From Eukaryota sp. TZLM1-RC (lineage: Eukaryota; Protista; Metamonada: BaSk clade), in the NCBI GenBank assembly GCA_040285825.1, contig JAUPSS010000003.1, positions 248,001 through 312,000 on the forward strand: a stretch of DNA of 64,000 nt. The letters run 5' to 3'. Below are positions 589-60,660 of the stretch, in pieces (within the stretch, counting starts at the first letter, position 1; the number at the start of each line of letters is the position of its first letter). Position numbers and translations under genes: made by a program. The notes beneath the pieces are model-generated. The model made no database searches. It was given only the letters and a program-made list of their open reading frames with translations, and had not been told where the DNA came from.

Positions 589-3213
589 ATGGTGAAAAAT
601 TTGGCTAACTAGGTGAAGAATGTCATCATGAATCTTCTTTTACTAAAAAGGTGAAACAACCATTCTTCTCAATAGAAACTGTTCAACTGCTTTCAGAAGA
701 ATCGATAATGAAAATAGCATCCATCTAACAGTACACAATTCATGAACAGATTTTGGGTCATTTCAATATTATTGTGATTAACCAAACAAAGAAACAAAAA
801 TATTTCAGATTTGGAACTATCAAAGATTGAAGCCAAAAAAATAATTAAAGATATGGATAATTCGAATTACACTTTGGAACAGAAAATTAGGTTCAATTAC
901 CTAAATTTCTTTTATTCAACTCTACAAAATCTTGATAATGAGCTTGGTCAAAGAAGGATTCAATTTCCAGATAATAAATCAATGAATCGAGTTTTCCACT
1001 ACACAGCCAAACAAATTGCCATTAATTATGGCAATAATCTCAGCAAATACCTTCATGAATATATGTTGCGCTGGTTAAACATTATCCCCTTGAAGAAGTT
1101 CAGACTAGAACAAATTCAGGAAAATCATTTGATGAAAGACTTATTGCCTAAACTCAACAAAGTCAGGGAAGCCATTATCGGTGTAAATTTTGATGAACTT
1201 CCTATCAATGATCACATTGTTTTTCCCTTTCCCCAGTCAGAGTTGACTTTGAAGTTTTTTGCTTATGTGAAACATTGTTTTATTCCCACTTTTATTAAGA
1301 ATAAAAATCTTTATTATACTCAATCAGCCAAGCCATTGCAATTTCTGTCTTAGGCTATATATATTAACAGAAGCATTCAATCTTTCTGTTCCCATGATGG
1401 CAATCCTTTGTCAGTGAATAATCCTTTTCCATTGACAACTACATTGATTCCACAGCGTATAAGACTCGACACTCATTGGCTCAATGAAAGATTTAGCAAG
1501 TTTCAGAGGAAGAGCAAATGACATAAGATCATCAATTTTTACCGAAATACTAACTGATAAGGTATTAGATTCTTACAAACGTGAGACTAAAAGTTGCGTT
1601 CAATTGAAATTCTCCTCAATTGTAACAGATGGGATTGCTTGTTCAGTGGTCTTAACTGGTAAAGACCTGATTGCTGGAAATGGAAATGTTTTCAAGAATT
1701 TTACTTCCAAGACGTACCCAGAACGATACATACATTCCCTGTCTGCTGAAAATGTCGAGAAGTTGAAGTTAAAAGATAAAAGAATAGTTGCCATCGACCC
1801 TAACGAGTACGATTTAATGCACTGTGTTTCTCCAAATCCTGCTGTAACTATTACCCCAGAACAAATTTCACAAAATGTGTTCTATAAAAAAGACAACTTC
1901 CAGAAATCAGAAGCAAAAAACGCAAAAGTATTAAAAGAAGAGAGAAACAATTACAAAATCTATCAATCTATTCCAACTCTGACTCTCATTGCACGGCTAA
2001 AACCCAAACACTGGTGGAACACGTACAAATATACTGCCGGTGAACGCCATTTTGACAGAAAAAGTACCAAATATCGTTCAACGGAAAAAAGAAAAAAGAA
2101 AATTGGAAAATTGGAAAGTACAATTACCTGATGGTGATTACTCAGGTCAGGATATTTTAAATCAATTTTCTTTATCTGTCTCAAACAGACAACAAAAATC
2201 TTGTTTCAGTCAACATTTTGGTCATTACATCAAGGAATTTGAGCGATACAATGTTCATATGAATATTTTTTACCAAGATGTATCGTTCAGAAAAAGAAAA
2301 TTTCAAACGTATTCGAAGTGAAAAAAACATGCTGGAAAGATTCAAATGGACCTTTGGTTCCCCTGTAGACGTAGTTATTGGTTATGGTGACTGGAGCTCG
2401 AAAGGAAATACAAGGAAGGGAAAAACGTCAACCATATGAACCGAAATTCGCAAACTATTGAGAAGATTTGGTTATAGAATTTTCCTAGTTGATGAATATA
2501 GAACGAGTAAATCTTGTTCTAGTTGTGCTGCCAAGGGAAATTTTGGAGAATGTGTCAACGATTCTAGTAATAAAGTGTTAGGTCCTAAGGGCAAACGACA
2601 ACTAAAAAGAAAAGCAAAAAAGTTACAACAGGAAATTGAACTATTTAATCAAAACAATCCTACTAGAAAAAGAGATTTTCAACAAGAATGGGGTGAACAG
2701 AAAGATTCACTAGAAGAAACAGCAAAATCAACACCGTGGGGTTTAGTGAAGTGTCAGACGTGCATCACGTAATGGAATAGAGACTTCAACTGTGCCATAA
2801 ATAAATATCCCATTATAACATCTGCAATCAACGGTGAAGGTAGACCATCCATTTTCGAGAGACCAAAAACTCAAACAAAAGATTTCGAAAATGGATCATC
2901 TACATCACAGAGAGATAAGAAAAAGAAGACTGCTGAGAAGGACAAAAAACCGAGAAGATGTGGTTTATATCGCGGAGAAGGCCACAACAAAAGAAACTGT
3001 GCATCGCAAGTTCCTGAAACAAGCACATCCTCATCGGGTGCAAAAAGAAGACTGGGAGGAACTAAAAAGAGAGTGGTCAACAAGATCTCTGTAGAAGAAA
3101 ATATCAGTCCATCTTAAACGATGTGGCAGCTCAATAGTGTCTGAAGTGGTAATGAAGAATGGATTTCCAATGTTGGTTGGAAAATGCATTTGGATTTGCC
3201 CTAGTCTTCTTTT
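589..3213 (+). mobile_element. Fanzor1-type (TnpB-like RuvC nuclease) element, family D, pseudogenised; C-terminal zinc-knuckle tail; 3' non-coding end runs to host ATG 3214
   Basis: Across frameshifts/stops: FPLTTTLIPQRIRLDT, SIVTDGIACSV, RuvC-I VAIDPN, VVIGYGDW, RuvC-II LVDEYRTSKSCSSC, WGLVKCQTC, RuvC-III WNRDFNCAIN, GRPSIFER; final stop 3115-3117. Left boundary approximate. Confidence 0.88.
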
Positions 3214-4984
3214 ATGGGCTCTTGTGTCACCAAGCCCGATAAATCCACCACATCATCGATAGCAAATACTCGTTTGTACACATCTTCTCACTTCACTGAC
3301 CTCAGATGCTCGCTCTTTCTTTCAACACTTCCGTTTGGCTGTCATTAGTATCACTGGCACTGAGTCTTCTGATGTTTCGTGTGTAAAAAATCAACTGGCC
3401 CTAGTATCTCCCAAAACTACATCTTTTTCCATTTCCTTCTCAGGACGACCTCTCTCTTTTTCGACAACATCTGCACTCTTTGATTCTATCAAGCAGATAC
3501 CATGTGATTTTTCTCTTTCTTTTGAAAACTGTGCCATAAACCAAGATGGTGGTATCATTGAGCAGATTTGCCACTCTCTTACAGGAAGTTCCCTCATTAC
3601 TTCTCTCAACCTTACTGAGAACCTACTTGGCCCCTCTCACATACTGTCTCTTTCCCAATGTCTTTCAACTAATAAATCTCTCTCCTGTTTAGTCTTATCT
3701 CTCAACCCAATAGGTCCTTCTGGATTTAAGTCACTTTCAAGGTCTTTATTTAGAAACAATACGTTAATTGAACTGAGGTTGGCAAGATGTTCTTTAACAA
3801 GTGCGGCAGTTTCTGATATTTGTGCATTAATAAAGGGTAATAAGAAACTTGAAATTCTGGATTTTAGTGAAAATCTTTTTGATAAAAAATCTGTTGAGAG
3901 GTTGATTTCCTCAATTAAAACCAATTTCTCAATCAAAACCTGTTCACTGGACGGTAATGATGTTTCGTCAAGTCTTTCTTCTACACTTTCCGCTACGATT
4001 ACACGCAATGTAGTTGTTAATCAAATAGTTTCTGACCTGGTGGAGTCGGCTCATAGTCGTTATGTGTCGCTGTCCGATTTAAAAGAACTCGAATCATTCG
4101 CTCCTGTTCAACTATCCTCGTCCACTCCTAGTTCCAACAACTGGCATTCACTTTCTCCTCTTGACACAAGCCCTCACCAATCACTCCCTTCTGTGGTAGA
4201 TTCACCTGCACCTTCACTCCCTTCATGGCTTCAGTACAGACCGTTGCCCAATCAAGTCTTAAACCTTGGCCATTCAGAAACCATTGGAAGAAGGAATGAG
4301 ATGGAAGATGCTGTCTGTATTGCGAAGAATCTTGGAGGCTTCAAACATGTGCACTATGTCGGCCTATTTGATGGTCACGGGGGTTCTTATGCCAGCGAGT
4401 ATTGTTCAAATCATTTCCATACTGTATTGTTTGAGCATTTAAAGGTTTCTAGACCTGTGATGGCTCTGAAAACAACCTTTGTTCAGGTCAATTCCATGGT
4501 GAACAAAGCCGGAATTGAAGATGGTACAACAGCTTTGATTCTATTGGTCATTGGCAATAGAAGATTTGTCGCTAATGCCGGAGATTCAAGAGCAGTTTTG
4601 TCTCGTAATTCTAAAGCCATTAGACTCTCTGTTGATCACAAACCAACTTTAACCGAGGAGGAGGAACGTATAAGGAATCTAGGAGGGTTTGTTGAAGAAG
4701 ATAGAGTACTTGGAACATTAGCGGTTTCTAGAGCTATTGGAGACTCTTTCCTTCAACCCTATGTTTCCTGCAGGCCGTATGTCTCAGTCACTGAAGTTTT
4801 ACCAGAAGATTCTTTTCTGATTTTGGCTTGCGATGGTCTTTGGGATGTTTGTACTGATGAGGAAGCAATCAAGTTGATTGCAAATGATTATGATCCAAAT
4901 CAGGCAGCTTTAAGACTGAGAGACTATGCCTTTGCTAATGGATCAAGTGACAACATTAGTATAATCGTTGCGAAATTTTCATAG
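3214..4984 (+). CDS. LRR + PP2C (PPM) protein phosphatase with N-terminal acylation motif; 34-nt intron 3272-3305
   Basis: RNI-like LRRs; PP2C motifs GRRNEMED, FDGHGG, DGTTA, NAGDSR, DHKP, AVSRAIGD, ACDGLWD, GSSDNI. Splicing GTTTGT...CACTGACCTCAG joins ATG 3214 (MGSCVTK) in frame to ORF 3335. Confidence 0.9.
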
Positions 4985-5082: not shown

Positions 5083-6186
5083 CTAATGACCTAAAGACTT
5101 TAACATTTCTGCTTGCTCATGAACAGTTCCTTGCAAACGAGCGATTTCATTTCTTAGTGCATAAACTTCGCTTTTCAGAACTTGTTCTCTTCTCAAAGAC
5201 TCATCCTCAGATACTTCTAGCTCACGTTTAAGGTCTTCAACGTCCAGTTCCAATTGTTGAATGTCACTCTTGAACTTCCTTGTAGAAGCATTCTGCGCCT
5301 TCTTAAGAACATCAGTTTTTCTAAGGAGATTTTCAATTTCTTCTTCTTTTTCAAGAATTTCAGCATCTTTCTGTTCACAAATTAACTTGAATCTATTAAG
5401 TTCATTTTCCAAAAGCTCATATAGTTCCAAAGGAACCATATCCCCATTATGATGCTCCTCATTTACAATATTACTACGTACAATTTCGTCAGCTTTGGAT
5501 TGTAATGGTAACAGCACATCTCCCTTCATTTCCCTAATAGTAGAAGCAACCCCTTCTAGCTTGGACATTAAAATTCTGATCCGTTTATCCTGAGATTTAA
5601 TAGTTTTCTGCTGTTGATCTCGCGTGTCCTTGTGTCTCTTCACTTCAGATTCAAGTAACTTTTTTTCACGTTCAAGGCTCTTGAAAGACGTTGGACCCTC
5701 TCCTGTATCCAGAGAGGTTTGAAGTTTGAGAATTTCTTCATCTTTACGTTGTTGTACACGGAGTAGAGTCTTTTTTTCGAGTGCAAGTTCTTGAAGTTGC
5801 CTATCTCGGTCTTTTAACTGGTTGTTTAATTGGGTGATGACATCCTGGGGAGTAGTTTCAATATCGTTGATCTTGGAGGAGAGATCTTCAATAGCTTGGG
5901 TTTTGGCTTTCTCTATGCGGGACAGGGTTCGGTTTTCGTGTTTGAAGCGTTCAAGTTCATTTTCAAGACTCTTTATTGTGTTTTGAAGCTTAGTAACTTC
6001 GTGATTGGGATCGCTGGAGTTGTCTACACGGTCACGAAGTTGTGAGAGTTCCTTTTGATAGATACGGGATTCTTTGCGGAGCATTTTGGTCTGTTCTTGA
6101 GAGGCTGAAAGTTCAGAATTCTTGAGTTTCAGTTGTGACTCAAGCTCCTTGATGCGTTCTGCAGCGTCCAGGGCAGATGCTGTCAT
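5083..6186 (-). CDS. Coiled-coil protein resembling microtubule-associated protein MAP70
   Basis: 367 aa; ENRTLSRIEKAKTQAI and DMVPLELYELLENEL...EKEEEIENLLRKTDVLKKA recall MAP70 conserved blocks (from memory). Confidence 0.65.
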   Translation of the reverse strand: MTASALDAAERIKELESQLKLKNSELSASQEQTKMLRKESRIYQKELSQLRDRVDNSSDPNHEVTKLQNTIKSLENELERFKHENRTLSRIEKAKTQAIEDLSSKINDIETTPQDVITQLNNQLKDRDRQLQELALEKKTLLRVQQRKDEEILKLQTSLDTGEGPTSFKSLEREKKLLESEVKRHKDTRDQQQKTIKSQDKRIRILMSKLEGVASTIREMKGDVLLPLQSKADEIVRSNIVNEEHHNGDMVPLELYELLENELNRFKLICEQKDAEILEKEEEIENLLRKTDVLKKAQNASTRKFKSDIQQLELDVEDLKRELEVSEDESLRREQVLKSEVYALRNEIARLQGTVHEQAEMLKSLGH

Positions 6187-6212
6187 TCTTACAGGTATTA
6201 TCTATAACAATG
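6184..6212 (-). promoter_or_regulatory. Remnant of Fanzor family C right end abutting ATG
   Basis: cattgttatagataatacctgtaagaATG: 21/26 identical, ungapped, to 58327-58352, with the ATG in the same register. Confidence 0.8.
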
Positions 6213-7464
6213 TGTGTAGTCAAAATGGATTTTCTTTTTTTTTGATAGAATAAAATCCAGTTAAGCGAATCGTTTGAAAGACGTTCAGTTGGTTCGTTCG
6301 AAACGACCCATCACTGTTTTAATTGTTCACTTTATACATATACAAAGACAGTTTTCAATAAGTAATTTGAATAGGTCCTGAAAACAGGCTTAAGTGGTTT
6401 GAGACGATCTCGATTTTCAGTGACTATCCTTCCCTTGTTGAAATCTTGTTGGTACACTATTGAAATGAATAAATTTCATGAATACAATTGTAGAATAATG
6501 TTTAACGGTGTGACTCAGAACTTCTATTGCCCACTTTGTGATTTTGCGTCTATGCGACGCATTTTTGCTTCCCAGCTGATACTTTATCTTTCAATTGCGA
6601 TGACCTTGGTTTTATGCTTATAAACTGGAAGAGAGAACATCACTTCATGAATTAAACAAATTTTTTATTTCAGTGTTCATTATGTTGTAGACAGAACCTA
6701 CATTGAATTTCGGTCGGCTGATCCACATTGGTTTGAAGTTAATAGTTTATTGCATAAATAGCCGGAAATTATTTTATGTCCGACTCAAAAACTATTGAGT
6801 ATTAATTTTTTGTCCCAAACCCTATTGTCTACTTCTGCAATTGGCAGATGTCCTGATTCATTCTTACTCGTATCTATGACTAGGTCTTCTCTTTCACGAA
6901 AATTTATGTTTCACAAATATTGCAGACATGTGGACGAGGAGGGAGAGGAGGGCGACGCTCACAGTACTGTATACTGAATGACTAGCTAACTTCACAAAAA
7001 CCTCAATTCAAACCTGAATACCCTATGGTTCTTTTTTTTGAATGTAGAATGTTTAAACAATGCGTAAGGTCTCCAGAAGTAGAGAAGGTTCTCAAGGGGA
7101 AAATGGTGATGCTGTATTTGTTTTAATTTATTTTCAGAAAAACTTACACTTTATTTTACTAAATCAGTTACCTTTCACAATCTGGATTACTAATTATTTA
7201 TTATCGTTGCTTGGACTTGCAAATATTTCTTTCAATCTGGAATAATACTAATAATTATAGATGTATTTCTGAAAACTGCTGGGACGAGCTAAACTAGTTC
7301 AATCAACGATCCGCTGAACGTTTGGATTTCTGGTACTGGCTCAATTACTATCGTTGCTAAATGGAGATTCATTCCTTTTGTAAAAAAACAAATATTCACC
7401 AACGAATTCACATTATGTGATTAAATTAAAAAGTGATAAAAATGTACGGGAGCAAGAGTTGAAA

Positions 7465-7932
7465 CAAATTTCGAAGAAAACATGAAAAATTAGAATTTTG
7501 CTGCAAGGAAAAAACAACTCTTCTCTTTCTATTGGAGCTTTTAGCTAAACAGAAATTAGAGTCATGAATTTAACAAGATTCATGGAGACAGAGAGGGTTG
7601 AAGCAAAATGGATTAATGAATTTGAATATATATTTGGAGATCCAAAAAATAACATTGTAGTGATTGATGATTGGAAACAAATAAATTTTAGACGTCAAGC
7701 ACCTGTACAGAATGTTGGTTATAAAAATTTGTTCAAAATATGTAACTTCCGTCTATTGCTCTTGGATGAATAAAGAACTAGTTGTCGATGTCTTGCATGT
7801 GTACTCAAGGGAAAAGAATGCCAAAATGAAAAGAGACATCGAGTACCTAATCCAAAACCTTATAGGAGAGCAAAGACTCCAACAGTCTCAGACAAGGAAT
7901 ACTCACTTACCAGAAGTCGATGTCTATGGAAT
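7465..7932 (+). mobile_element. Fanzor family B internal fragment (pseudogene)
   Basis: Highly similar to 17165-17640; FGDPKNNIVVIDDWKQ, LLLLDE*RTSCRC, VPNPKPYRRAK. Confidence 0.85.
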
Positions 7933-8433
7933 TTTATTGTCAAGCATAAAGCTCCAATAATAGTAATAGCAATAATTTGTTAATGAATTAAATAATTTCG
8001 AATCTGAAAAGGAATTTAAATTTGGTTTAAATAGTTTTAACGTGTTGATGACTTTCAATCATAAACAAAAATTACTTTTGATGTTACCATAGTTAGAGGT
8101 TACGGTAATAATTGGAATAATGCGTTTTCGAAAGCTCAATCAGATAAGATGTAAAAATATTCGATTTTAAAAAAATTTAATTTAATTGAAGAAATTGTAC
8201 TTCTCGTTTTGAGTGTTCATGGATTTTTTGAAACTAAAACTAAAGTAATTTTTGACCAATTTGGTTGGAATGAGTTAGCAGATGAAATAAGTCGCTTCAT
8301 TTTGAAGAATAGCTTTAAATGCCAAAGTGCTTTTAATTAAATTCTTCAAAAGACAAGAGAAGAAAGTCAGTGTTGGTAGATAGTGTTATTTTGGTTTTCA
8401 AATGGTTTCACATCAATTTAAAAAGCAAACAGT

Positions 8434-8503
8434 TCTTGATTCATTTCATCCTGCAGAATTCTTACCAGGTCACAACTATTTGACCTTTCTGTTCCATCAC
8501 CCG
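8434..8503 (+). promoter_or_regulatory. Degenerate Fanzor family B right end abutting SKA3-like ATG
   Basis: 17-nt exact match tcttgattcatttcatc to 17725, plus 26/36 ungapped identity over the last 36 nt before the ATG with 17765-17800. Confidence 0.8.
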
Positions 8504-9418
8504 ATGTCTTCCCAAAACCCTATAGGCATATTCTTTGATTCTCTCCGAGTACTATCCAAGTCTGTCAATGATAGGGTCACAGAGCTGAAACAAGTGTATG
8601 AAGGTGTCTCTGATCTTTGTTCCTCTAAATCACCCTTATATGAACTGAAGTCCAAAGTCATTAGTCTCAATGAATCTATAGACAAGGTATCAAGTGTTGT
8701 TTTCCAGGATCCTCTTTCCGACATCTTTGACGGTATTCTTCAGCTCTGTACATCCACCGACCAATCCATTTCATTTATTTCAAGTCAGCTCACTGATCAC
8801 GACTTACCTCCCCCTCCTGAATTTCAGCTTCCTAACCAACAGTCCAATCCTTCTTCTGATGCACAACACTCTGATTCTGACCATTATTTTGATCCTCCCA
8901 CTCCTTGCATCCCTTCCACTCCCAGTCATAACCAACCTTCCCCGGCTGCTCAAATCGAAACTCCTACCCTTGATGACCTTGGTCTTTCTGATCTTGCCAT
9001 TGGGGCTATTGACGGAAATACAAGCTCATCACTGCCCTCTCAACCTCTACAACTAAACATTGAAGCTTCCCTTTCTCAAGGTACTTCAAATTCCATCACA
9101 AACAATGAATCTCAATTAAATTGTTTGGATCATGTAAGTGATGTTGAATACGACACTCTACCATCATTTGTTAGGTCTTGCGTGGACTTGAATCAAGTCA
9201 ATGAAGCTATAATTAACCTTAATGCATCAATTGGTGATTCAATATTCCAGTCACGATCTTTTTTACCTTCTCAAATGTCAATGAGACAGTTGATGGAAGC
9301 AGCATCAATTGAAGAACATCAAAGCAACGCCAAGATCTTGGTTTTAGCACTTGTGAAGCTGAACAGGATTCATTCACGGAATGAATCTGGCACTGTTTTA
9401 TATATTTTAAATAATTGA
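8504..9418 (+). CDS. Spindle and kinetochore-associated protein, SKA3-like
   Basis: N-term PIGIFFDSLRVLSKSV, ETPTLDDLGLS motif and C-terminal SKA-type domain (VSDVEYDTLPSFVR...LALVKLNRI); true start taken as MSSQNP at 8504. Confidence 0.65.
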   Translation: MSSQNPIGIFFDSLRVLSKSVNDRVTELKQVYEGVSDLCSSKSPLYELKSKVISLNESIDKVSSVVFQDPLSDIFDGILQLCTSTDQSISFISSQLTDHDLPPPPEFQLPNQQSNPSSDAQHSDSDHYFDPPTPCIPSTPSHNQPSPAAQIETPTLDDLGLSDLAIGAIDGNTSSSLPSQPLQLNIEASLSQGTSNSITNNESQLNCLDHVSDVEYDTLPSFVRSCVDLNQVNEAIINLNASIGDSIFQSRSFLPSQMSMRQLMEAASIEEHQSNAKILVLALVKLNRIHSRNESGTVLYILNN

Positions 9419-9423
9419 GTTAA

Positions 9424-10992
9424 TTAATTTACAATTTTATTTTTTAATTGGTCTATAAATAGATCGTCAGCTTTCCACAAATCATCTATATTTTCACTAA
9501 CTAATTCTGTATTGTCTTCTATTGTTAAACCTTGTGGTTGATTACATTCCACTTTTATAGGTAGATCATTAATTAAAGATTCAACAATTTCCTGAATAAA
9601 CTGTTTTTCTTTTCTCCCTTCAATTAATTGTCTAATTAATTTGGTAGAAGAACTATCTTGAAAAGCACCAACTGCCCAATTGATTTCAACTATCATTTCC
9701 TCTTGGAGTGCGGGTAGAACAGAAATTTTCCATTCACTGTTGAAAATACCATAGAAATCTCCCTTAATAATAAAATCAACTTTCACGTTTTCATTAGGAA
9801 GTAATACTGAATTTGAATTGAAACACAATACATTTGCATTTGGTTCTGCTTGAGTTAATAGAACATTGACACTTTCTGCAGAGTTATTGGTTATAATTAT
9901 TGACTCAACTCTTCGGTTAAGCCCTGGAGCACCAGAATAAAGGAAGGTGGATATATGATCACGTGATAAATCAATAACAGGTTTTGAACTGTTGACAGGA
10001 GTAAAAGATTGATTGTTTTTTAGAGTTTTCTCAACCTGTGTTTGGATACTATGAACATTAAAAGACTTTTCTTGAGTTTTTGAATTCTTGACTTCTTCAT
10101 CATCAGAGAGGTCTTCATTTTGTAAATTCAAAAGAAACAAATCAAATTCCCGGGTAATTTTTTCCTCAGTTAGTAGTCCTTCTCCTGACAAAACAAGACT
10201 ATCAAAGTCTGGTTCGTGAGGTACGACAGACCTTATACGACTTTTCAATTCAATCCTTCTTGTCTGAGCATAATCTGATTGGTCAAACGATTTTTTCTCC
10301 TTTTTGACCTTTTTACCAGGCCTTCTAACCATTTCAATAGGTTTTGGTTTCGTTTGCTGTACAATTGGGCAGTAAAGACAAGAGAAGGGATTACTGGAGA
10401 TTGGAACAAAATTTGTCCCTCCACCCCTTAAAGACGCCTGCCAAGAAGACTCATCATAATGGGATCGGGGTTGGGCTCGGGAGAAGATCGCCCTTTGTTC
10501 AGTACGTTCCCTAAAAGCATCAGACCGTGAAATCACCAGCTGATCGGTTGGTACCTTTAATTTAGAAGCCAAATGAATTTTGAACTTGTCCCATATACGC
10601 TGAGTTTTGTGGTAATGGTCCAGTGCTCTTTGCTCTCGCAACAGTCGGGTTCTTTCAGATGGATCTAGTGTGGAGAGAAAAGCTTCTTCGGCATCGTGAG
10701 CATTTTCAATATTGTCTTTGATGGTCTTAATGGTTGTAGCAAGGTCAGGTAGAGAATGCGCTTTGGAAGCAGTGTTGTTGGTACCTGTGAAGGTGGAAAA
10801 TGAGAGCTGTGTAGTGGCTGTTTGGTTGTCAAGAGTAGTAATTGTATTCGCAATTGAAGAACGTTGAAGACGTTCGGGTAATGGACCATAGGTTTGTTCC
10901 TTTTGTGTAATAAGAGTGTTACGGTGAGAATCATTGAACTCTTCAATACTACCAAGAAGAGTCGTGTCGTTCAATTCTGAAGGAACAGACAT
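9424..10992 (-). CDS. MYCBP-associated protein-like (ciliary)
   Basis: REQRALDHYHKTQRIWDKFKIHLASKLKVPTDQLVISRSDAFRERTE segment followed by an Ig/ASH-like domain. Confidence 0.7.
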   Translation of the reverse strand: MSVPSELNDTTLLGSIEEFNDSHRNTLITQKEQTYGPLPERLQRSSIANTITTLDNQTATTQLSFSTFTGTNNTASKAHSLPDLATTIKTIKDNIENAHDAEEAFLSTLDPSERTRLLREQRALDHYHKTQRIWDKFKIHLASKLKVPTDQLVISRSDAFRERTEQRAIFSRAQPRSHYDESSWQASLRGGGTNFVPISSNPFSCLYCPIVQQTKPKPIEMVRRPGKKVKKEKKSFDQSDYAQTRRIELKSRIRSVVPHEPDFDSLVLSGEGLLTEEKITREFDLFLLNLQNEDLSDDEEVKNSKTQEKSFNVHSIQTQVEKTLKNNQSFTPVNSSKPVIDLSRDHISTFLYSGAPGLNRRVESIIITNNSAESVNVLLTQAEPNANVLCFNSNSVLLPNENVKVDFIIKGDFYGIFNSEWKISVLPALQEEMIVEINWAVGAFQDSSSTKLIRQLIEGRKEKQFIQEIVESLINDLPIKVECNQPQGLTIEDNTELVSENIDDLWKADDLFIDQLKNKIVN

Positions 10993-11067: not shown

Positions 11068-11230
11068 GAATTTCTATCAAAACGCACTTCTGGCTTTTGA
11101 CCAATTCATGCAATCTTGATAGACGTTAAGCTTACTTTCGTTCTATCACTATATGATGTCACGATCAAATGATAGTTAAAGCAGCAACATCACAATACGC
11201 GTACAGGTACGCAATACATGGAAAAACACT
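11068..11230 (-). ncRNA. Putative omegaRNA scaffold of Fanzor family A
   Basis: Conserved non-coding tail with hairpins gcgta-cctg-tacgc and tctatcaa...ttgataga; identity to the second copy stops sharply after gatagaaattc. Confidence 0.65.
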
Positions 11231-13126
11231 TATCTACGGGGTCTACGGAACGCCTCAGGTCTTTCATTGTAGTAGTGCTCACTTATGGCAATCTCCAGTT
11301 GGTTTCTGGAAGCTGAGATGTCCCTCGACCAGAGTGTCTGACATTGAGGGCATACAATATTATCATTGTGCACCCTCCCATCATCGTGATACAACTTTTG
11401 AATACCTTACAGCAATTCGTTTTGGCAGATATGTAGAATTCATCTCCATTAGGCTTCACATATGTAAAATGTTTCTGAATCTCCTTCAAAAAGCGCTTTC
11501 TTGGGGTTTTCACAGCTTGTCTTGATGGCCCATCACCTCCACTACCATACCAAATTATGGTTTCTCTTCCATTAGCCATTAGTTTAATTTTTTCAATTAA
11601 TCCCATTATCCTTTTTTGTCTTCTTATAAAGAAATCAAACTTGTTGCGGTGCAGGGCTCGGAGATCTCCATTTATCAGCAGTTGGTCTAGTATAGTTCTC
11701 GGGCGGAAGTCGGGATTGCTGATTTCTTCATGTGTCGGTACCCACATCAAAGGCATTGCTATTTCATTAAGATATTTGTGTAAATTCTTAGCAAAATAGC
11801 AATTTGGTGATACATGAGTCAGGACTGGTGGTTGAATGATCTTCTTTGCCTTTGGATTCAGAACAAGGCCCGAAAGTTGATGGTCTACATTATTATTTTC
11901 AATTCTTGATCCAATTGAATAACCACACAAATGTTTGTGATTAGGATCAATTGAATATTCAATTGGATCAACTGGAGGAGGCTCTTAGGCGTCGTCAGTT
12001 CTTCGACGTTGCATTGGACAAACATGTTTTTAAACTCTAGAGTTTCGTTTTCGACTCTTTGCAGGCGTATCGAGTTCCCCACTGGATATGGTGGTTGCCA
12101 ATTCTCTGGCTGTCCGGCAATTCTTATTTTTTTGGGGGCAAAAGAAAAAGTGAAGCGGATTGAAACAGCATCTGAACTGATTGTGTAAGTCAGATACTTC
12201 TTTTTTCTGAAAAAGGCAAACGGTTCTTTCAGCAGACAGTGGTTGGCATTAAAAGAGAGAAAATGCTGTTCCAGTTTTTGACTAAAAGAGATAAAGCCAG
12301 GAGAATAACTGGGGGATGGGCAGACGGCATTTCTTCGCATAGTGTCAGATGCAATATTTTCCAGAAAGGATAAAATATTTAGCCCAGCAGTGAATATGAA
12401 GGTGCTGTTGTCTGGACTGAGATCAACATTGTCCAGCATCAACATAGCGTTAAAACCATGAGGGTCGGCAACCTGCTGAGTAAATAGGTCCATTATGTAC
12501 TCATGGTGACCTTCATCATACCATGCGCGCAAAGAGTCAGGAATAGTGGCTGCAGTCGTGTTCACCACTAATGAAGCATATTTCTTTGGGCAAGGGCACT
12601 CAAAGAAGGTAGCCATTGTCCGGAAGAAGTTCAGCTTCCAGGAGACAGGACCATCAGTAAGTGTTTGACAAAAGCTGTTCGCCATTTGCAGTGCGCGAAA
12701 GCTTCTAATGTCAGAGTGGCACCAGTTGTCGGTTCCCTTCTGAAAGCCAATAGGAAAAAATGGCCAGCCAGGTCGGAAAGAGACATCATAGAGTGCGCGG
12801 TACACTTCCATATGATTCTCGACTGGGCGTCTCACAGTCGGATGAGGTACCATTACAAAGTTTTGACATTGATACCAAAACTGTTGTTGATATAACCAGA
12901 AAGCCATTTTCGGATATTGCAGGACGAACAGCTGTGCTAACCGGGCAGTAAGCACAGTGACAGTTCGAATATAGCGAAACTGTCTTTCCATTGAAACAAG
13001 AGCTGCAGTAGAGAACTGAGCAGCTCTTGCTGGAACTGTCGTCTTGCTGTCGTTTATTGGTTGATCACGAAGGTTAACCTCCCAGGGCAGTACACGCCCT
13101 CGACGTGGCAACTCTGGATTTGCCAT
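11068..13126 (-). mobile_element. Fanzor family A element, near full length, frameshifted
   Basis: ORFs 11885-13126 and 11283-11930; TISSDAVSIRF, RuvC-I YSIDPNHKHL, IIWYGSG, RuvC-II GDEFYISAKTNCC, CPQC-WSRDISASRN; 3' region shared with 26693-26840. Left end undefined. Confidence 0.88.
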
Positions 13127-47955: not shown

Positions 47956-48032
47956 ACTTTGCTAATCATCGTAAAAATGAGGAAAAGGGAAAAATATTAT
48001 TTATTTACAATCTGTTTAACAGCTACAACAGA

Positions 48033-50758
48033 CTACTTTAGTGATTCAAATTCACTTTCAAATACGCTGGGCAACAGCCCTGCCTTCTTAATACTATGCA
48101 ATGATGTAATACCATCTTGCACTTTTGCATCTACCTCCAAACTGTGTAACTTCAAAAATAGACAAAATGCTGCCACTTTACCATAAAAGTCAACCAAGTT
48201 GACCAAGTTGACATTTGAACTGTTAGTTAAAAATTTCAAAAACTCTTCATCGTCATTCCAACTCCTGGAAAATTGGGTGATGAAATTGGTTTCAACCTCT
48301 GTGGGTGGCTTTGTTAAAGGTAAATTGAGACTAATCTGGGTTGATAAACTAATTAATTTGTCAGAGAGGTCAAAAGAAAGGCCTCGTTGTGAAAAAGATA
48401 TGCTGAAACCTAAACAGAAGCAAGCCATTGATTGGATAAAGGTCGACAGTGTTTAAAAAGACATAACAAATTCTCCAATTCCAGTTGTGAGACACCAACA
48501 GATTCCAGTATTTTGAAAGCTTCAACGGCAAAAGAACATATTACAATTGACTAATGAAGACCACAGAAAAATCAAAACCAAAAAAATCTACATCAGCTTT
48601 TCCTCGTAATTGATGAGTGAATCGTAGTAAAAATTTGGAAGTGAAAGTCATTAAAGCCTCAAAATCGGAATGTTCTGTCTTGTTAGATTTCAACACATTA
48701 ATAAGTTGAGAAGCAATGTTAATTAGAAACTGCTGATGAATTTCACAAGCAGAAAACACAATCCCAAGCAATAATTTCTTGCTTTCCACCGCAAAATCTT
48801 CTTTAGAAGAAGATTCAAAAGCCTGAATGAAGTAATTAAGGAGATTATTACTGGTACTGCTGAGAATTTTGTTACACTGCTTCTTGAAATTTTCCTTGTG
48901 AAAGTTCTTTGAATAATAAAAAACAGCATGAACAATTTCAAAATGATACACACATGTTTTTTTGGTCAAAAATCAACTGGCAGTTTTAATAATTCTGGAA
49001 CAACTGATAACTTGATCAAACAATCCAAAATGTTATTGGGTGTACTTGCTTCAGCTGAACAAACTGCTTCGTAAAGAAATGATAATAAGTGTTCTCCTCC
49101 GACATTATGCTTCAAGGCAGCGGAAAAAAGTTCACAACAAGGTGAAGCAACTTCAACTAGCCCACCACACAAAAGACCCAATGCAAAACAAGCATCAAAT
49201 GACAAGTGAGTCAAACGTTTACAGAATTGAGGGAGTAATTTAGTCCTGAGTTCGTTGACTAGAGAGGTTTTTAAACTTCCTGAGCAAGAATTTACCAAAA
49301 CAAACCAGATTTCAAACAAATAGTATAAAAACTCAGCGGGTAAATAAAAATTCCAATTAGCGTGCGGTAAGGGTATTGACAACAAAGTATTCAAAAAATT
49401 ATCATCAATTAGGCTAATAAACAAAGCATTAGTGACTTCATCTCTGTCAAAGACAGCTGAACTTCTGTAAACAATAAAGACAAACCTCAAAAGAACAATG
49501 TAGTCTGATTGAGGAACTTCCCAGGAAACACATCCACTCAAAAGACTCACAACAAGAGGAACCAACTCAGAGATAAGCTGAATTGCATGATCAGAAAGGG
49601 TAAAGTTTGAAGTGATGCCCTCATAGCTGAGGCAATTGCAGAGTGATTCAAAGAACCAAACGCAATGCTCCGTGAAAGAATTTTCAAATGTCTGAACTGA
49701 AGTCAATTGTCCAGCCAACACTGTTGCTTGTTCAAGTAGATAGACTAGAATCTCAACACCAAAAGAGTACTTGATGCAAGTTTTTGCCAACAAACCACAT
49801 CGATGTTGAAGTTCTTCGTTCTGGGAGATTATCCATATACCCCATGTTTCAATTTTTTGAACCAAACACCTGGCAAAATACTCATTATTAAACGCCAAAA
49901 CTTCTAACAAAGCGAAAAGTGAAGCCTTTGCTGAAGAAGATATAGAGGAACTAGAAACATTCATGAAAACTTTCAAGAATTTATCCACTCTTTCTTCGTA
50001 ATTAGGATGAGATTGATCAAACAAGACAATAAAAACATCTGAAAAACAACTAAAATCGCCTATACAATCACAGACCTGATAAAGACCTTCACAAACAACA
50101 TTGACAACTTCAATATTTACCAAGACAGAATTCAGAAATTGGGCAAATTTCTGGGAATTGCAATTAATGTAAAAAAAGACTGACCAAACAGAATCAGTGT
50201 TGATCAAATCCAAGAAATCTCGAGTCCAAGGATGACTGGTTGAGATCACAATAACATGGAGTAGTTTAAAGATAGGGTCATAATCAGCTCTAACTTTATC
50301 ATCACCCAAGTGTTTTTCGAATTCAATAGGGAACGGAAAGGGAAAGAAATTAGTATAATCAGCAACCAAATATTTAATCAATTCTGTTGGTAGGTCCAAT
50401 TTCATCAGTAACTGGGGAATACAGAGATCTAACGAACAAAGATGATAAAGTACCTCGAAAAATTCTTCATAATTTCTCCAATGAATTCTGGATAAGTTCA
50501 AGCAAGAGCTCCAACGATGGATAAACTTCACCACAACAGATTGATCACAATCAATTTTCTGAGTTTCAGATTGATTGAGTGACGAAAGAAGATCCTTTTC
50601 GACAGAAAAACAGACATACATAGCAATGTTGAAAATTCTAGCAAAATTTTGACGCACAATTGGTACCGAAGAAGAGATCAAAATATGAGGAAAAGAGCTC
50701 AAAACACCATTTACAGCAGAGAAAACCAGTTCCACATTTGCAAAACAGACAAAACTTT
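48033..50758 (-). pseudogene. C-terminal part of a USP9/24/34-like helical protein, 5'-truncated and frameshifted
   Basis: PIVRQNFARIF..HWRNYEEFFEVL; no ATG start, reading frame begins at the N2 element junction; breaks near 48966 and 48541. Confidence 0.5.
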
Positions 50759-51993
50759 TGCTCAAAAATTCAAACTATTTCATGTCACTTTTCTGTCTTC
50801 ACTTGTTGGAATTGATCCATCGTACATGAAAATATACATTTTTAAACGCAAAACATGGTGGAGCTGGTTTTCACAAAGGAAGCAGAATTGTCAAAGCAGC
50901 TTTTATTGGTGGAAAGAAAAATTTTCTTTTCAGTTCTTTTAAACGTTTTCCTGCATTGTGATTATCATTTGTGAAAAACTCCAATCTTCCAGTTTTTGAT
51001 GATCTTCAAAATCTAATTAATGATTTTCCTCAAGATGTTTGTATATGACTGGTTCATCAAAACACTTCTCCAAAAACAGTTGAAGCTCGTTTATTTGATG
51101 TGTTAACCAAAGCTGCATTTAATTTACAAAAAAGAATTACTGATATAGAGGAAGAAATATTTTTGAATGGTTTACTTTCTAATCATTCAGAAAACAAACA
51201 GTTATATCAATTTTTCTTAGAAGTTTCTTTTGCTTACGGTGTTTCTGCTGGTGCTGCTTCTATTACTCAACCTTTCCGAAAATTTGGATTGTGGTTAGAA
51301 GATGGTGTTTACAGACTTGCTATGAACATACGTTTAAATGTACCTGCTAATATTGGTCAAACTGATTTGAAGTATAGATGTAGACACTTTTCTTTACTTT
51401 GCACCATATCTTCAATTGTAACAAATTTGGAAAATTTCGTGATTTTCTTCACAATTGAGTGAGAGAAACCTTGTGGTCGATGTGCAGTAATTCAGGTTTA
51501 AGTTTTGAAATTGAAGTAATTTTGAAATCATTATACCCAGATGTTGTGACGAATGACACCAAGGATGTTGTTCCTTCGTTTAAAGTTACTGTTGACTTAT
51601 TAATTGATGTTGAGACAGTTGACAAAACAAATAATACAAACTGTGGACATCAAGATGTGATGAAAATATTAACTCGCAACGAATTAATCAAGCACAATCA
51701 TTTTGATCCTTTAGTACTCAAAATGAATAAGTTTTTAAAATCTAAACAAAAGATTCAATGGTCTTGTAATTTCTTTGAATGGACGATTAAGATTTTAGGC
51801 AACCTTGATGTTGGATGAATTTAATGATTTTATCATCAAAAAACGCCATTTGTTTATGTTAAATTTCTGGATCAATTGAATTGTCCTCAAGTTGTACAAA
51901 GGTCTTGGTAAAAAGGTTGAGGCTGTGGAACTTGCTGTTGCTCAAAGAGTGTTTCACAATGTAGGTGGAGACTCCTCTCCTTTGAGGAAGTAA
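50759..51993 (+). mobile_element. RLE-type non-LTR retrotransposon family N2
   Basis: Reverse-complement match to 14894-16125; frameshifted. Confidence 0.85.
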
Positions 51994-55151: not shown

Positions 55152-55219
55152 TTGTTGGAAATGTATCTGAATTGTAAATTACTGTGATTTTTTTCACTTT
55201 GAACTTTTTTTTGAAATAT

Positions 55220-57225
55220 ATTTATTTATTAGAAAAGTTATAAATCAACCTCTGAATAATCCATCTCTCCCAAAACAAAACAACTAGATGCAACTCTCTC
55301 ATAGTGAGATCCAAGAGAAAGCAAAGCATCAGAAACCATCTTCAACATCCCCTTAAAAATAGACAACACAATTTGATTTTGCCAAACAAATTGTTGAAAT
55401 TTCTGTTAGTTCTCTTTACAATCATTTCAAAATCTGCCAAAAAACGTAGAGCCGTAGGAGCAAGTGAACCAAATAGAGAAAATACAACGATACAAATTGG
55501 ATTTTGCATACTGATGGCTGGACATTTAGGACAAAGGTTCATTGTGTTTTTTGATTTAGAAATTTTCAGCATTTGAAAGGGAATTATGAATTTCAGAATT
55601 AGCTAGCCTTTCATTTGAGGTATTACAAGGATCAACAGACATTACAATTAATAACATGAAGGTTCGATCCAATCCAGGTAATAAGACATCACCTCTATTA
55701 TTCTTATGAAAATCATTCTTCAGCATCAAACAGATTTGACAACAGAGGGTCCAAAAAGGATTCAATTCTATGAGACTTACACATACAATATAGTTGGACT
55801 CTTACAGCAGCCTGAACCTTACTTCTAAAAGTAATAAAATGTTTACACTTTAACAAATATTATTTTATTCATTCAACAAGAAATATGAAAACATAAAATA
55901 CACAATTAAAACTCCACATCCTCAAAACCTGCCTCCCCTACATCAAAACAATTAATTGCCAAAGATTCAGAAAATTTCCCAAAAGAAGAGAGTGAATCAG
56001 AAATTAGTTTTATCATTCCCTTAAAAATAGAAAATACAATCCTGTTTTGCCAGTAAACACGATTGAGAATTCTTCCAGTTCTTTCCTTTACAACTACAAC
56101 AAAATCCTCAAGAAAATCCAAAGCAGCCTTACCTAAAGATTCGAGCAAGCAAAAAAGAAAGAGGCATAAATTATATTGGGCATGAGAATTTTCATTGACA
56201 GAAGAAATAGGTTTCGCGTATTGAGCAATTTTGTCTTTTTCCTCAGCAGGAAGAGGATAATTTACATCTGAATTAATGATTCGTTCGTTAGAAGAAATAC
56301 AAGGGTCAATAGACATGGCGTCTAAGATAGTAAACTACCATTTAAACCGGGAACAACTAGATCACCTCTTGTCAGACCCATGGTGTTAGCAGAAGAATCT
56401 GCTAAGTCTAGTTAAAAATGTTCAATGATCAACCTCTCGAGATCAAGGGCACCTCCAACAATAGAAGCTCTGTTGTAGCGCGTACTATCAATATTGGGGT
56501 CATCAAGAATTAATTTTAATAACAACTGCTCTAAAAAGGAATCTACTCGATATGATTTGCACATTACATAAATTTGGTCCCTGATATTATTATGCACTTT
56601 GCTTCTAAATGTAATGAAATGTTTACAGTTCAAAAGATGATTAAACAAAAGAAATTTACCACATTTACAAGTTAAATGATTGGGCAAATTGTTTGGCCAC
56701 AGAAAACAACGAAAACGTATGTTTAAAAGCCATTCATTGGTTTTTAACAAAAGTCCATAAACAGAGGGAATTTGAGTTACTAAAGCAGCAGCAGAACTAT
56801 CACGAATGTCCTTTAAAAAAATTACCGAAAGCGGGATTTCCAGTTTTGGCCAAGCAAAGTCTTACCAAGCCAAGTCGATTTAACAAATGAGTAATTGTAA
56901 TTTTTCAAGAACATCTACAAATAAAATTATGAGGTAAATTATCAGGCCAGATAAAGGAACGAAATCTCTTATTCAAAGTCCAAGCAGAATCAGTTAAGAG
57001 AGTGCCATTTACTTGGGGAATTGTTGTTACTGAAGCAGAAGATGTACTATCGCACATATCTTGTAAAAGATTTGCCAAATCGGGATTCTTTTTCTTGGCC
57101 AGGCCAAGTCTAACATCAAAATTCAAGCTTTCAAATATCTTTGACAATTTTTGTTGAAGCTTTTTACAGCAAAACTGCAAATTAAAAAGAGATCGGTTTG
57201 GAATTTCTTGAAATGATTGATTTTT
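55220..57225 (-). mobile_element. Stacked fragments of RLE-type non-LTR family N3
   Basis: Two endonuclease ends (RGDVLLPGLD; TRGDLVVPGLNG..MSIDPC), CKCGKFLLFNHLLNC..HNNIRD, and a second partial copy 56900-57225. Confidence 0.8.
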
Positions 57226-57227
57226 TT

Positions 57228-58012
57228 CTCTCACTCGATTGTGAAGAAAATCACGAAATTTTCCAAATTTGTTACAATTGAAGATATGGTGCAAAGTAGC
57301 AAAGTGTCTACATCTACACTTCAAATCAGTTTGACCAATACTAGCAGGTACATGTAAATGTATGTTCATAGCAAGTCTGTAAACACCATCTTCTAACCAC
57401 AATCCAAATTTTCGGAAAGGTTGAGTAATAGAAGCAGCACCAGCAGAAACACCGTAAGCAAAGAAACTTCAAATAAAAAACTATATAGCTCTTTGTTTTT
57501 GAAAGATTAGAAAGTAAACCATTCAAAAATTCTTCTTCCTCTATATCAGTAATTCTTTTTTGTAAATTAAGTGCAGCTTAGGTTAACACATCAAATAAAC
57601 GAGCTTCAACTGTTTCTGGAGAAGTGTTTTGATGAACCAGTCATATACAAACATCTTGAGGAAAATCATTAGATTTTGAAGATAATAAAAATCCGGAAGA
57701 TTGGAGTATTTCACAAATGATAACCACAATGCAGGAAAACGTTTAAAAGAACTGAAAAGAAAATTGTTCATTCCACCAATAAAAGCTGCTTTGACAATTC
57801 TGCTTGCATTGTGAAAACCAGCTCCACCATGTTTTGCGTTTAAAAATGTATTTTTCTATGTACGATGGATCAATTCCAACAAGCGAAGACAGAAAAGTGA
57901 CATGAATTAGTTTGAATTTTTGAGCAATTGGGAGAGTAATTTCTGAACGTAAGCAGCGATAAAAATGATTTAAATCAGAATTAAAACAAATGTTTCCAGT
58001 ATAAAACTAGAT
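57228..58012 (-). mobile_element. Non-LTR family N2 fragment
   Basis: Nearly identical to 15422-16207. Confidence 0.85.
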
Positions 58013-58352
58013 GCTGCAATTTAAGAAAGTGGAAAAAACAGTTGAAACATTGCGATGGTGCAGAAATCCCATGCCATAGGAGGCACGAGATGTCTAATGG
58101 TCGCGGGCTTACCATGTGTGAATCATGTAAAAGCTTGTGGAATAGAGATCGAAATGCTTCACTGAATATGTGGGTAGTGATGGAAGCATGTAAAAGGTGG
58201 AGATAGACCGGAATACCTACAGAGAATCAAGGTTGACAAAGGTTCAAAGAAAAAGGTATCAAGGAGAAAAGCTTCCATTCTCAAATACTCAGTCTCTCTA
58301 CATTGGTGTAAAGAGGACACTTATTGCATTGTTATAGACATCATCTGTAACA
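58013..58352 (+). mobile_element. Fanzor family C 3' fragment with structured right end abutting ATG
   Basis: GLTMCESCKSLWNRDRNASLNM, DRPEYLQR; hairpins ctctctaca-ttgg-tgtaaagag and cattgttataga-catca-tctgtaacaATG. Confidence 0.85.
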
Positions 58353-58868
58353 ATGAGCAGTGCATGTGCAACAGATGATTTCGTTGCCACCAATCACCTG
58401 TCACAAACACTCGACCTCAGCAAGGTTCATGGACCTACTTCATTGTCATATAGTGTCCCAATCCCCCCAACTGAGGCATCTTTGTCTTCCACTAAGCCCT
58501 CTTCGTCCTCTTCTTCGGTGTTTTTACCTCAGTTCCTCAAAAATCTATTCTTTCTATCAGGGGGTGCATTCATTGGCATGGCAATAGCCTGCACTCTCCT
58601 ATCCTTTTTTATAAATGAAGTTCCCTCTAAACAACTTTCATTATTTAATTCTTTGGCCTCATCTTTATTACTTATATTTCTTTCAGGCACAGTGCTAGTG
58701 GTGAAGGCTAATGGTAGCACCACATACAGGCTGGCTGTTTTATTTGCTGCGATTTCTCTAGTTTTGAGGACTCTTTGGTCAATTTCCAATGATTTTGTTT
58801 TTCTTTTTTTCTATTCTTTGTTTTCAGTTGGTTTCTGTTTTGCCTCTTTTATGTGTTTTGGTGGTTAG
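58353..58868 (+). CDS. Small membrane protein (~4 TM), unknown function
   Basis: 171-aa ORF, Ser-rich N-terminus and four hydrophobic segments. Confidence 0.6.
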   Translation: MSSACATDDFVATNHLSQTLDLSKVHGPTSLSYSVPIPPTEASLSSTKPSSSSSSVFLPQFLKNLFFLSGGAFIGMAIACTLLSFFINEVPSKQLSLFNSLASSLLLIFLSGTVLVVKANGSTTYRLAVLFAAISLVLRTLWSISNDFVFLFFYSLFSVGFCFASFMCFGG

Positions 58869-59201: not shown

Positions 59202-60527
59202 CTACTGAAGTACCAAATACTGTTTTTCTAGCTTAATTTGCTCCCATTCGATTCGCAAAATGGCCCACAAGATTCTTCTAAACACTTCCACAGATTCCTG
59301 AACAACCAAAACTAGTGGAGCAAAAAACCAAAGGTGCATTGGAAAGGCAAACAAAAGCCAAAAAAACCTTAAAAAGATATTGATAACAATTACTAAGGGG
59401 TAGTAACAGGGAGAAAGGTAAAGTTTTCGCCTCAAAAGAGTTACATTACGGTCTTCAAGATTCTCCAGTAAACCCCAATCAACAAATAAATCAAATAAAG
59501 AGGCGTAAAAAGAAGAAATAAAATTACTTGCCAAAAACAGATAGTAAAAAACACTATTTTCATGGTTAAATCTTCCAGAAACAATAGAGAATAAAATAGC
59601 CGCTATTGACATTAGATATTTGAGTGCATTAGTTGAATGAGGGTGTGCAGAACAAAACCTAAAAGAACAAAGACAAGACGGGCTAAACTTGATGATGTTC
59701 CTTACACAGTGCCAAAAACGAACCCAGAAAGGAAAAACTAAAAGAAACGGTGTCCAAAAGGCCAAGGAAACTTGACAACGATCATTAGCATCCAATATAC
59801 TAGGTGAATGAATGTTGAAAAACATGCATCCAGTGAAATAGAAATCTAGAAAAACTTTGGACAAACTAGTTAAGATGTCAGCCCAAAAGAACTCATTAAA
59901 CCCAATCCTGCCAAAAGGAGCAATTAGACAGTGAAAAAGGGTAGATAGAAGGTAATTACGCGGCCTTGAGTAGCAACTTCTGAATGGGAAGAAAAAGACC
60001 AAGCCAAAGTACACAATGACAAGGAAAGGGTAAGGAGACAATGGAGAGAGAAAAGCTGATGGATATAAGGGTAGGAATGGTTTGGGGAGTGGAAGGAATC
60101 CGGTGATGGTAAAGAGAAAGAGTAGAAAGAGTACATTCCATCCAATGGAGAGGAAAGAGGCAAGAGTGAAGCAGTTGGTGGGAGAGAGGGAGCGTTCAAG
60201 GGTTGTAGTTAAAATCGAGAGATAATGAACCCTGCGATGAGAGAGATAAACAGAAAGGCAGCCCCAGAGCCATAAGAGAAAGTTTAAAACAAATGTGAAT
60301 CGAAAAAAAGGAAATCCAATTGAAAAAATGGGATTAGATTCCAGTGAATATTCAAGAACCGGAATAACCAAGATAGAGCCCATCAGAAGAAGTTGTGAGA
60401 AAGCGGACACGAACCAGAAAACAATAAGCAAGGGTTTGAGTGCTGATGACCAAACGGAAGAAGTAACTGGCTTCAAGTCAAGAAGGAATTCTGAGGGAGC
60501 TGCTTGCAGTAGAGGTTGGTGACTCAT
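59202..60527 (-). CDS. EXS-family (ERD1/XPR1/SYG1) membrane protein
   Basis: FNEFFWADILTSLSKVF, PFWVRFWHC, NALKY, DLFVDWGL, NIFLRFFW, EVFRRILWAILRIEWE; start taken at MSHQP 60527. Confidence 0.88.
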   Translation of the reverse strand: MSHQPLLQAAPSEFLLDLKPVTSSVWSSALKPLLIVFWFVSAFSQLLLMGSILVIPVLEYSLESNPIFSIGFPFFRFTFVLNFLLWLWGCLSVYLSHRRVHYLSILTTTLERSLSPTNCFTLASFLSIGWNVLFLLFLFTITGFLPLPKPFLPLYPSAFLSPLSPYPFLVIVYFGLVFFFPFRSCYSRPRNYLLSTLFHCLIAPFGRIGFNEFFWADILTSLSKVFLDFYFTGCMFFNIHSPSILDANDRCQVSLAFWTPFLLVFPFWVRFWHCVRNIIKFSPSCLCSFRFCSAHPHSTNALKYLMSIAAILFSIVSGRFNHENSVFYYLFLASNFISSFYASLFDLFVDWGLLENLEDRNVTLLRRKLYLSPCYYPLVIVINIFLRFFWLLFAFPMHLWFFAPLVLVVQESVEVFRRILWAILRIEWEQIKLEKQYLVLQ

Positions 60528-60660
60528 TCTTCCAAATACTGCAAAATCGTAATGAAGTAACTGTCCTATATGCCAATGTTGAGGAATTGTGTTTTTGGAA
60601 TGGGAAATTCCTGATTGGATAAGTTCCATTTTTTGAGTTCCTGTTCCAAATCTTTTTCAA
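60528..60660 (-). promoter_or_regulatory. Degenerate Fanzor family C right end abutting the EXS ATG
   Basis: ttcccattccaaaaacacaattcctcaacattgg..ggacagttacttcatt..cagtatttggaagaATG is colinear with 58272-58355; upstream KKIWNRN recalls the LWNRD motif. Confidence 0.7.

Follow-up and report, generated by a model that had tools for sequence, protein, structure and literature searches.

Fanzor1 elements at host gene starts in the metamonad Skoliomonas: evidence for the placement and a possible explanation

The DNA considered here is a stretch of 64,000 nucleotides (nt) of Eukaryota sp. TZLM1-RC (contig JAUPSS010000003.1, positions 248,001 to 312,000), called the window below, and its subject is a set of elements carrying the nuclease Fanzor1. 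Going by the Skoliomonas genome paper and the strain names, we take the label TZLM1-RC to stand for Skoliomonas litria, a free-living metamonad; Skoliomonas is a soda-lake flagellate. Host genes take up roughly half of the window, and the remainder is decayed DNA of long interspersed nuclear elements (LINEs), Gypsy and Fanzor. All 11 Fanzor 3' ends in the window point at a host gene start on the same strand. The preliminary description of this DNA had listed ten such junctions; all ten are present, and an eleventh, at 63996, was added.

Read from the left, the window holds first a decayed Fanzor1 of family D (1484-3117, +), with the RuvC-I region at 1598-1981, RuvC-II, zinc finger and RuvC-III at 2365-2877, and a C-terminal extension up to the stop at 3117. 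This extension (2880-3117, +) is long and basic and has a knuckle-like motif, C-x2-Y-x4-H-x4-C. The D tail up to the host ATG measures 96 nt (3118-3213, +), and as there is a single copy the boundary of the element is not definable; behind it lies an LRR-PP2C gene (3214-4984, +), whose intron at 3272-3305 restores a frame of 578 amino acids (aa). On the minus strand, a weak C-like terminal hairpin remnant (6187-6212) is flush with ATG 6186 of a coiled-coil gene of MAP70/Lebercilin-like type (5083-6186). Family B comes twice. At the first site a C-terminal fragment (7464-7943, +), 88% identical to 17164-17651, is separated by about 480 nt of unrelated DNA from the right end (8428-8503, +), which is flush with ATG 8504 of a gene (8504-9418) with the Pfam domain SKA1; at the second, a Fanzor remnant and right end (16582-17800, +) are flush with ATG 17801 of a 530-aa gene (17801-19393). 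Two copies of family A, 96% identical, stand a little further from their genes. The first (11068-13570, −) has a frameshifted Fanzor open reading frame (ORF, 13126-11233) and an omegaRNA region (11229-11068), and ends 75 nt before ATG 10992 of a MYCBPAP-family gene (9424-10992, −). The second is 5'-truncated (25416-26840, +) and ends 62 nt before the ATG of KATNIP (26903-29740, +). A Fanzor C-terminal part of family A' (45804-46549, −) has its stop 308 nt before ATG 45495 of a SPATA20/YyaL-like gene (43801-45495). The other ends are of family C: a remnant (40498-40559, +) flush with ATG 40560 of the gene 40560-43754; a Fanzor tail with zinc finger, RuvC-III and right end (58010-58352, +), whose terminal hairpin pairs with ATG 58353 of a 171-aa gene without Pfam family (58353-58868, +); a remnant (60528-60609, −) in register with ATG 60527 of the EXS gene (59202-60527); and a remnant (63932-63995, +) flush with ATG 63996 of a putative gene running past the window end. 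Four of the 11 cases (6186, 40560, 60527 and 63996) are end-only remnants in which Fanzor coding sequence is not detectable. At two genes a further in-frame ATG lies upstream of the one given here, at 8402 for 8504 and, within the element end, at 60629 for 60527. As for names given earlier, the gene at 8504, called SKA3-like, has SKA1 in Pfam, and NELF-B (17801) and INTS2 (40560) stay unconfirmed, with nothing found in Pfam.

Is this placement peculiar to the window, or would any element end fall near a gene boundary in a compact genome? The genome beyond the window was sampled at 12 loci (labels L), and an independent test set of six further S. litria loci and four loci of the sister species RCL holds 14 Fanzor 3' ends. 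Host starts were taken from annotation and ORF calls, and an end was counted as docked when a same-strand host start lay within 420 nt. By this measure 10 of the 14 ends are docked, against 4-13% expected for random intergenic positions, and the same rule holds in the RCL loci; one additional outside copy is interrupted by a LINE. The 3' tails of LINEs in the same DNA served as a control, and 2 of 22 were at host starts, a few of these tails overlapping a gene or having none in view (Fisher p=2e-4 against 10/14). Orientation, compared with a bare 50:50 null, gives p=0.09 for the outside set alone and p=5e-4 for all ends (21/25). Host genes are affected in 11 of about 18 cases in the window and in a lower share, 6 of about 22, in the other S. 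litria loci. A pure effect of compactness could appeal to the spacers of 36-165 nt that divergent host gene pairs share and to two LINE tails that also abut starts (51993 in the window, 16009 in L006), but the LINE control, the orientation and the junctions in one register in families C and B all speak against it, and we regard it as extremely unlikely. The register can be seen from models of the ends. A C model made from three copies only (58353 in the window, L005 and L004) recovers 40560 (E 1e-7), 60527 (1e-5) and 63996 (0.01), all in register; at 6186 its match is weak (E 0.47), beside a 12-nt exact match (p=0.002). One B end likewise recovers the other (E 4e-4). A Fanzor1 profile run over the window found no further Fanzor 3' part, and the reversed-sequence control gave no match. 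Gene-start placement of Fanzor1 elements is real and statistically supported in two species, and the data support a systematic placement that spans several families. The earlier claim that no right end lies elsewhere is correct for the window and too strong outside it, where the rule is not absolute.

What kind of elements are these? The family A motifs IDPN, GDEFYTS and WSRDISA make up the D-E-D triad of RuvC, in which the catalytic E comes shortly before the zinc finger; the residues D372, E522 and D566 are invariant. A profile of A-like proteins and distant relatives (A2) matches SpuFz1 over its whole length (E 3e-57), GtFz1 (6e-39) and PpFz1 (7e-34), and Fanzor2 only locally (1e-11). Single-sequence searches of the PDB missed the Fanzors, which were found by the deeper profile alone, and families B, C and D were assigned to Fanzor1 by motifs and profile matches only. 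Sequence comparison supports the elements being Fanzor1 lineages, with the catalytic triad preserved in every family checked, and the IS607-type pairing of a serine recombinase with a Fanzor2-clade nuclease was not found in the elements examined. The Fanzor ORFs of S. litria are frameshifted or truncated. In RCL there are seven full-length relatives of 592 aa and four of about 605 aa, with intact triads; the 95-98% identity among the seven suggests recent spread. GEM has one relative. All homologues of a family A fragment come from Eukaryota sp. TZLM1-RC, and a scan of JGI metagenomes and IMG/VR with the family A alignment and the C-end pattern gave no match. The non-coding right ends of A (26693-26840), A'' and XF2 are predicted to fold far better than shuffled sequences (z=-3.96, -2.66 and -3.52), as expected for omegaRNA scaffolds and in agreement with the preliminary description. 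The B and C ends, taken as whole regions, fold no better than shuffles. Family C has a terminal hairpin in which CATT pairs with AATG in most of six copies, with weak covariation (2 of 13 pairs), and which covers the start codon in five of the six.

Some families are fused to exonucleases. The longest element seen is XF1 of RCL (L012 9470-14016, 96% identical to L011 over 4.5 kb), which holds no transposase, its only protein being an Exo1-Fanzor fusion. The ORF for it (L012 10001-13972, +; P0176, RCL1_008468) is intact and encodes 1323 aa, arranged as a leader, a 2A-like motif (DVEPNPG), an Exo1-like nuclease (E 3e-38) and Fanzor1. The XF1 leader contains a pistol ribozyme (RF02679, Rfam 50 bits, cut-off 34.5) at L012 9812-9876 (+) and L011 7823-7887 (+); the ribozyme search found none in 9401-64000 of the window or in the S. 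litria loci. A second family, in L010, has the same four-part layout in broken form. In addition, a PolB-type 3'-5' exonuclease is fused to Fanzor1 in RCL (L008 1019-3049, +), upstream of a DNA polymerase A gene.

How close do the ends come to the start codon? Two classes can be told apart. In the old families B and C (identity 72-88% and 68-80%) the junction is 0-1 nt from the ATG, whereas the young families A, A'', XF1 and XF2 (92-97%) end 20-115 nt before it, with a median of 43 (old versus young, p=3e-4). A C copy in L005 retains the terminal ATG with no gene behind it. Since the C hairpin contains the ATG as well, this ATG may be a target motif built into the scaffold, or may be supplied by the element. 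In solved Fanzors the 3' target-site duplication (TSD) is built into the scaffold, according to a review (PMC13565253). One way to connect the two classes would be a ratchet, in which a copy lands loosely upstream and repeated cutting, exonuclease trimming and re-invasion shift the junction until the ATG stops it, the in-frame ATG of the C end supplying the start codon. The sharp division by age, the lone ATG in L005 and the existence of exonuclease-Fanzor fusions fit this scenario. Short tandem duplications of 11-17 nt, which may be scars of repair, occur within the right ends in L004 (about 11040), L008 (about 17340) and L011 (about 12010), and would fit it too. We nevertheless consider it unlikely, because it leaves the orientation bias of young copies unexplained, because erosion should nibble the element end too, while the register of the end is one and the same in seven C copies, and because age is confounded with family.

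The host side of the junction is short by nature. The start of KATNIP is native within four residues of its RCL and GEM orthologues, and the orthologous promoters there are 66 and 71 nt long without a Fanzor, so that empty orthologous sites exist. Native promoters being so tiny, a young copy can sit upstream without displacing the promoter; a flush end has to provide whatever upstream sequence the gene needs. The preliminary proposal that the element end replaces promoter and 5' untranslated region (5'UTR) is therefore forced for the flush families only; in young copies the 20-115 nt left are as long as a native 5' region. Have the right ends been taken over by the host? They could be retained to serve as promoter or structured leader; alternatively, the proteins could be RNA-guided regulators like TldR, a nuclease-dead repressor of the TnpB family whose guide matches promoter or 5'UTR DNA (PMC10705468). 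TldR lacks catalytic activity, and its target is fixed and addressed in trans; the Skoliomonas elements keep the triad, and the guide of each copy would be its own flank. TldR-like dead regulators are ruled out by the intact RuvC triad. End-only remnants do outlast the ORF at 40560, 60527 and 63996, and the C hairpin lies over the start codon in most copies; but with intact triads in every family checked, decaying ORFs in S. litria and empty orthologous sites, domestication is very improbable, and while it could explain retention, it could not explain arrival, as young copies are already biased.

Is the guide, then, the host gene start, as first proposed? This holds for families B and C only. 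For A, A'', XF1 and XF2, whose ends lie 20-115 nt upstream, a predicted 20-nt guide would be promoter or 5'UTR rather than coding sequence. If the guide chose the site, sister copies should have similar flanks; a gene-start-like guide would lead the nuclease to cut similar gene starts, and repair would copy the element in with no transposase. The lack of a transposase suits this mode of spread, as do the junction bases typical of each family, namely a purine after the ATG at 7 of 7 C ends and CCG-ATG-TC at both B ends and in L002. Among A flanks, one pair shows similarity (13.5/20, p=6e-4) and another does so marginally (p=0.04), though insertion into the remnant of an older end could account for the first. 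The guide-position flanks of sister copies are at background similarity in 9 of 11 pairs, and no common start motif is found in 19 Fanzor-free genes, which makes spread by the guide itself rather improbable. That the C end reflects a universal host promoter motif was also considered and rejected, for the same 19 genes score at background and share no k-mer. As homing alone cannot choose new sites and most sister flanks are unrelated, the guide probably follows from the site and does not determine it. At one locus, L002, the order is C body, A copy, C-like terminal remnant (p=0.004) and ATG; the A copy lying between C body and C-like remnant, 26 nt from the ATG, reads as one family replacing another. 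In L010 a palindrome at 6615-6679, a remnant resembling the right end of XF2, lies 31 nt from the Pecanex ATG; it apparently faces away and was not counted.

The left ends tell a different story. The right junction is precise within a family and the left one ragged, the left parts carrying pieces of divergent host genes of variable length. For example, A'' elements hold a fragment of CBP20, the nuclear cap-binding protein (E 1e-27), at L003 9315-9644 (−) and L005 9254-9532 (−), both annotated as separate genes, with 42 nt of it in L006. Family A copies share a divergent gene-start-like segment at the left (13417-13570, +, in the window, common to the L007 copy), probably a captured flank. Left of the same A element, a decayed gene-like stretch (13570-14760, +) consists of pieces without Pfam match. 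Among 10 elements searched for terminal inverted repeats (TIRs) or TSDs, the longest flank match is 5-9 nt, which is background, several left ends being truncated. In this, and in the missing transposase of the 4.5-kb element, they differ from the TIR/DDE transposons of Mariner, hAT, MuDR and Sola2 type that carry Fanzor1. By eye the left end of XF1 resembles the empty E2F/KATNIP spacer, but nhmmer did not recover the likeness, which was therefore not used. The elements have an intact 3' end with a hairpin plus 5' truncation, as non-autonomous Helitron2 elements do; RepHel was not found in the 12 loci, where only a RecD-like helicase fragment occurs, in L006. This fragment (18335-19003, +) has a 197-nt duplication and is possibly the relic of a rolling-circle element.

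Could the junctions have been made from RNA? A LINE reverse transcriptase might copy a host mRNA to its 5' end and switch to the 3' end of a Fanzor RNA, after which the chimeric cDNA would convert the gene start. This would yield the geometry seen, a 3'-intact and 5'-truncated element joined on the same strand to the 5' end of a gene, with the distance equal to the 5'UTR length, and LINEs are abundant. A pistol ribozyme or 2A-like motif in the leader is known from non-LTR elements, and the RCL element has both. However, about 340 nt upstream of the ribozyme are common to both XF1 copies, which argues that these were not made from cleaved RNA. The elements also take an antisense CBP20 flank with them, an intron persists 58 nt into the coding sequence of the PP2C gene, and marks of LINE retroposition, such as a poly(A) or simple-repeat tail or a TSD, were not found. 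The RNA route is in our judgement quite unlikely.

What, then, may place the elements at gene starts? Our proposed explanation, which we believe about as readily as we doubt, combines strand-specific insertion at transcription starts with Fanzor homing, in non-autonomous Fanzor1 elements for which gene starts are the niche. An enzyme acting on the opened promoter would insert each new copy in a single orientation, at the transcription start or shortly before it. The lead candidate is a trans-acting enzyme of HUH/rolling-circle type, not encoded in the copies seen; break-and-copy repair helped by the fused exonucleases may be an alternative route. Transcription through the right end would then give an omegaRNA with the next 15-20 nt as guide, as is established for the family, and the nuclease would cut the empty allele, so that gene conversion may copy the element in with its left-hand flank carried along. 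The insertion would be tolerated since young families do not disturb the short native 5' region, and for B and C, which end at the ATG, the upstream promoter or leader would have to come from the element. Gene starts may be invaded again, a new family replacing the 3' part of an older resident, as seen at one locus. We count the placement figures, the same rule in RCL, the Fanzor1 identity, the folded ends, the recent RCL copies, the lack of transposase and TSD, the host-gene pieces in the left parts, the order of families in L002, the empty KATNIP promoters and the precedent of CRe-1,2,3 in favour of targeted insertion with homing.

Several points weigh against this explanation. One enzyme, absent from all copies seen, must serve many families with different ends. 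The position at the transcription start is judged by distance to the ATG alone, and no empty allele was seen within S. litria. Outside the window few ends were sampled, 14 in all, of which 8 were chosen via annotated Fanzor ORFs and four face no gene start (XF2 in L010, a nested remnant in L007, and both A'' and C in L005). It is also possible, though doubtful, that the exonuclease-Fanzor fusion itself opens gene starts, repair copies the element in, the end becomes promoter or leader and families replace each other, which would make a transposase-free, RNA-guided class of mobile elements turning over many host promoters. As for homing with promoter replacement, the model of the preliminary description, it is partly supported: it fits maintenance and the flush families and leaves the targeting step unexplained. 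From what is known of TnpB and Fanzor, homing would explain how an insertion is kept and not why new sites are gene starts.

The proposal of targeted insertion with homing can be set beside known systems. With the Fanzor1 nucleases SpuFz1, GtFz1 and PpFz1 (PMC11423790) the elements share the full-length profile match, the D-E-D triad before the zinc finger and a folded non-coding right end. The Fanzor1 element SPu-1 has 33-bp TIRs and TA TSDs (PMC3627910), whereas none were found in the Skoliomonas elements; gene-start placement is not reported for Fanzor1, and fusions to Exo1-like or PolB-type exonucleases also set some Skoliomonas families apart. The closest anatomy is that of CRe-1,2,3 of Chlamydomonas, non-autonomous Helitron2-Fanzor1 elements moved in trans, 3'-intact and often 5'-truncated, which insert after TTTT, often with TSDs of 7-19 bp, and have Helitron2 termini (PMC3627910). 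They likewise lack a transposase of their own and have extra captured 5' sequence, but the Skoliomonas elements show no TSD, T-rich rule or partner Helitron in the loci examined, and their site is the gene start. In TnpB/OMEGA systems the guide is taken from the right flank, the empty site is cut and gene conversion follows; the available part of the review PMC13565253 describes no gene-start placement. Such homing would be shared as the expected maintenance step, and in these sources it restores or spreads an existing site and does not pick gene starts. The closest niche is that of Tf1 of S. pombe, which uses Pol II promoters and can affect expression of the next gene (PMC3553992, PMC5741268). 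Tf1 is a long terminal repeat (LTR) element, with its own integrase and no RNA-guided nuclease. Fanzor is nowhere mentioned in the Skoliomonas genome paper (10.1101/2023.05.03.539051). In the literature searched, which covered few subscription journals, we found no description of gene-start placement of any Fanzor or TnpB element or of exonuclease-Fanzor fusions, in keeping with the preliminary description; the placement rule was found there for no other element of this kind. Tf1, for its part, is not known to be strictly co-oriented with genes or to have junctions flush with an ATG.

These elements bear on how copies lacking a transposase move and on why Fanzor is retained by eukaryotic elements. 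One site rule is obeyed by many independent families of two species, and the recent intact copies of RCL make the target-adjacent motif, the guide boundary and mobility testable. If flush ends drive expression, a sizeable share of the promoters of this genome would derive from omegaRNA ends. The natural Exo1-Fanzor and PolB-exonuclease-Fanzor fusions, and the pistol ribozyme in the leader of a eukaryotic element, are of interest for repair-pathway choice and for editing tools.

The window also holds other elements. LINE-like 3' fragments of several families, which served as the control, lie at 14895-16207, 23672-24297, 46742-47956, 50758-51993, 55205-58012, 61825-62462 and 63649-63824, and the one at 50758 extends over the start region of host ORF 48966-50765. 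A Gypsy-type LTR retrotransposon (31472-37900, −) encodes protease, reverse transcriptase, RNase H and integrase, and contains an internal duplication of 200 nt (33527-33926) and 63-nt repeats (37655-37780).

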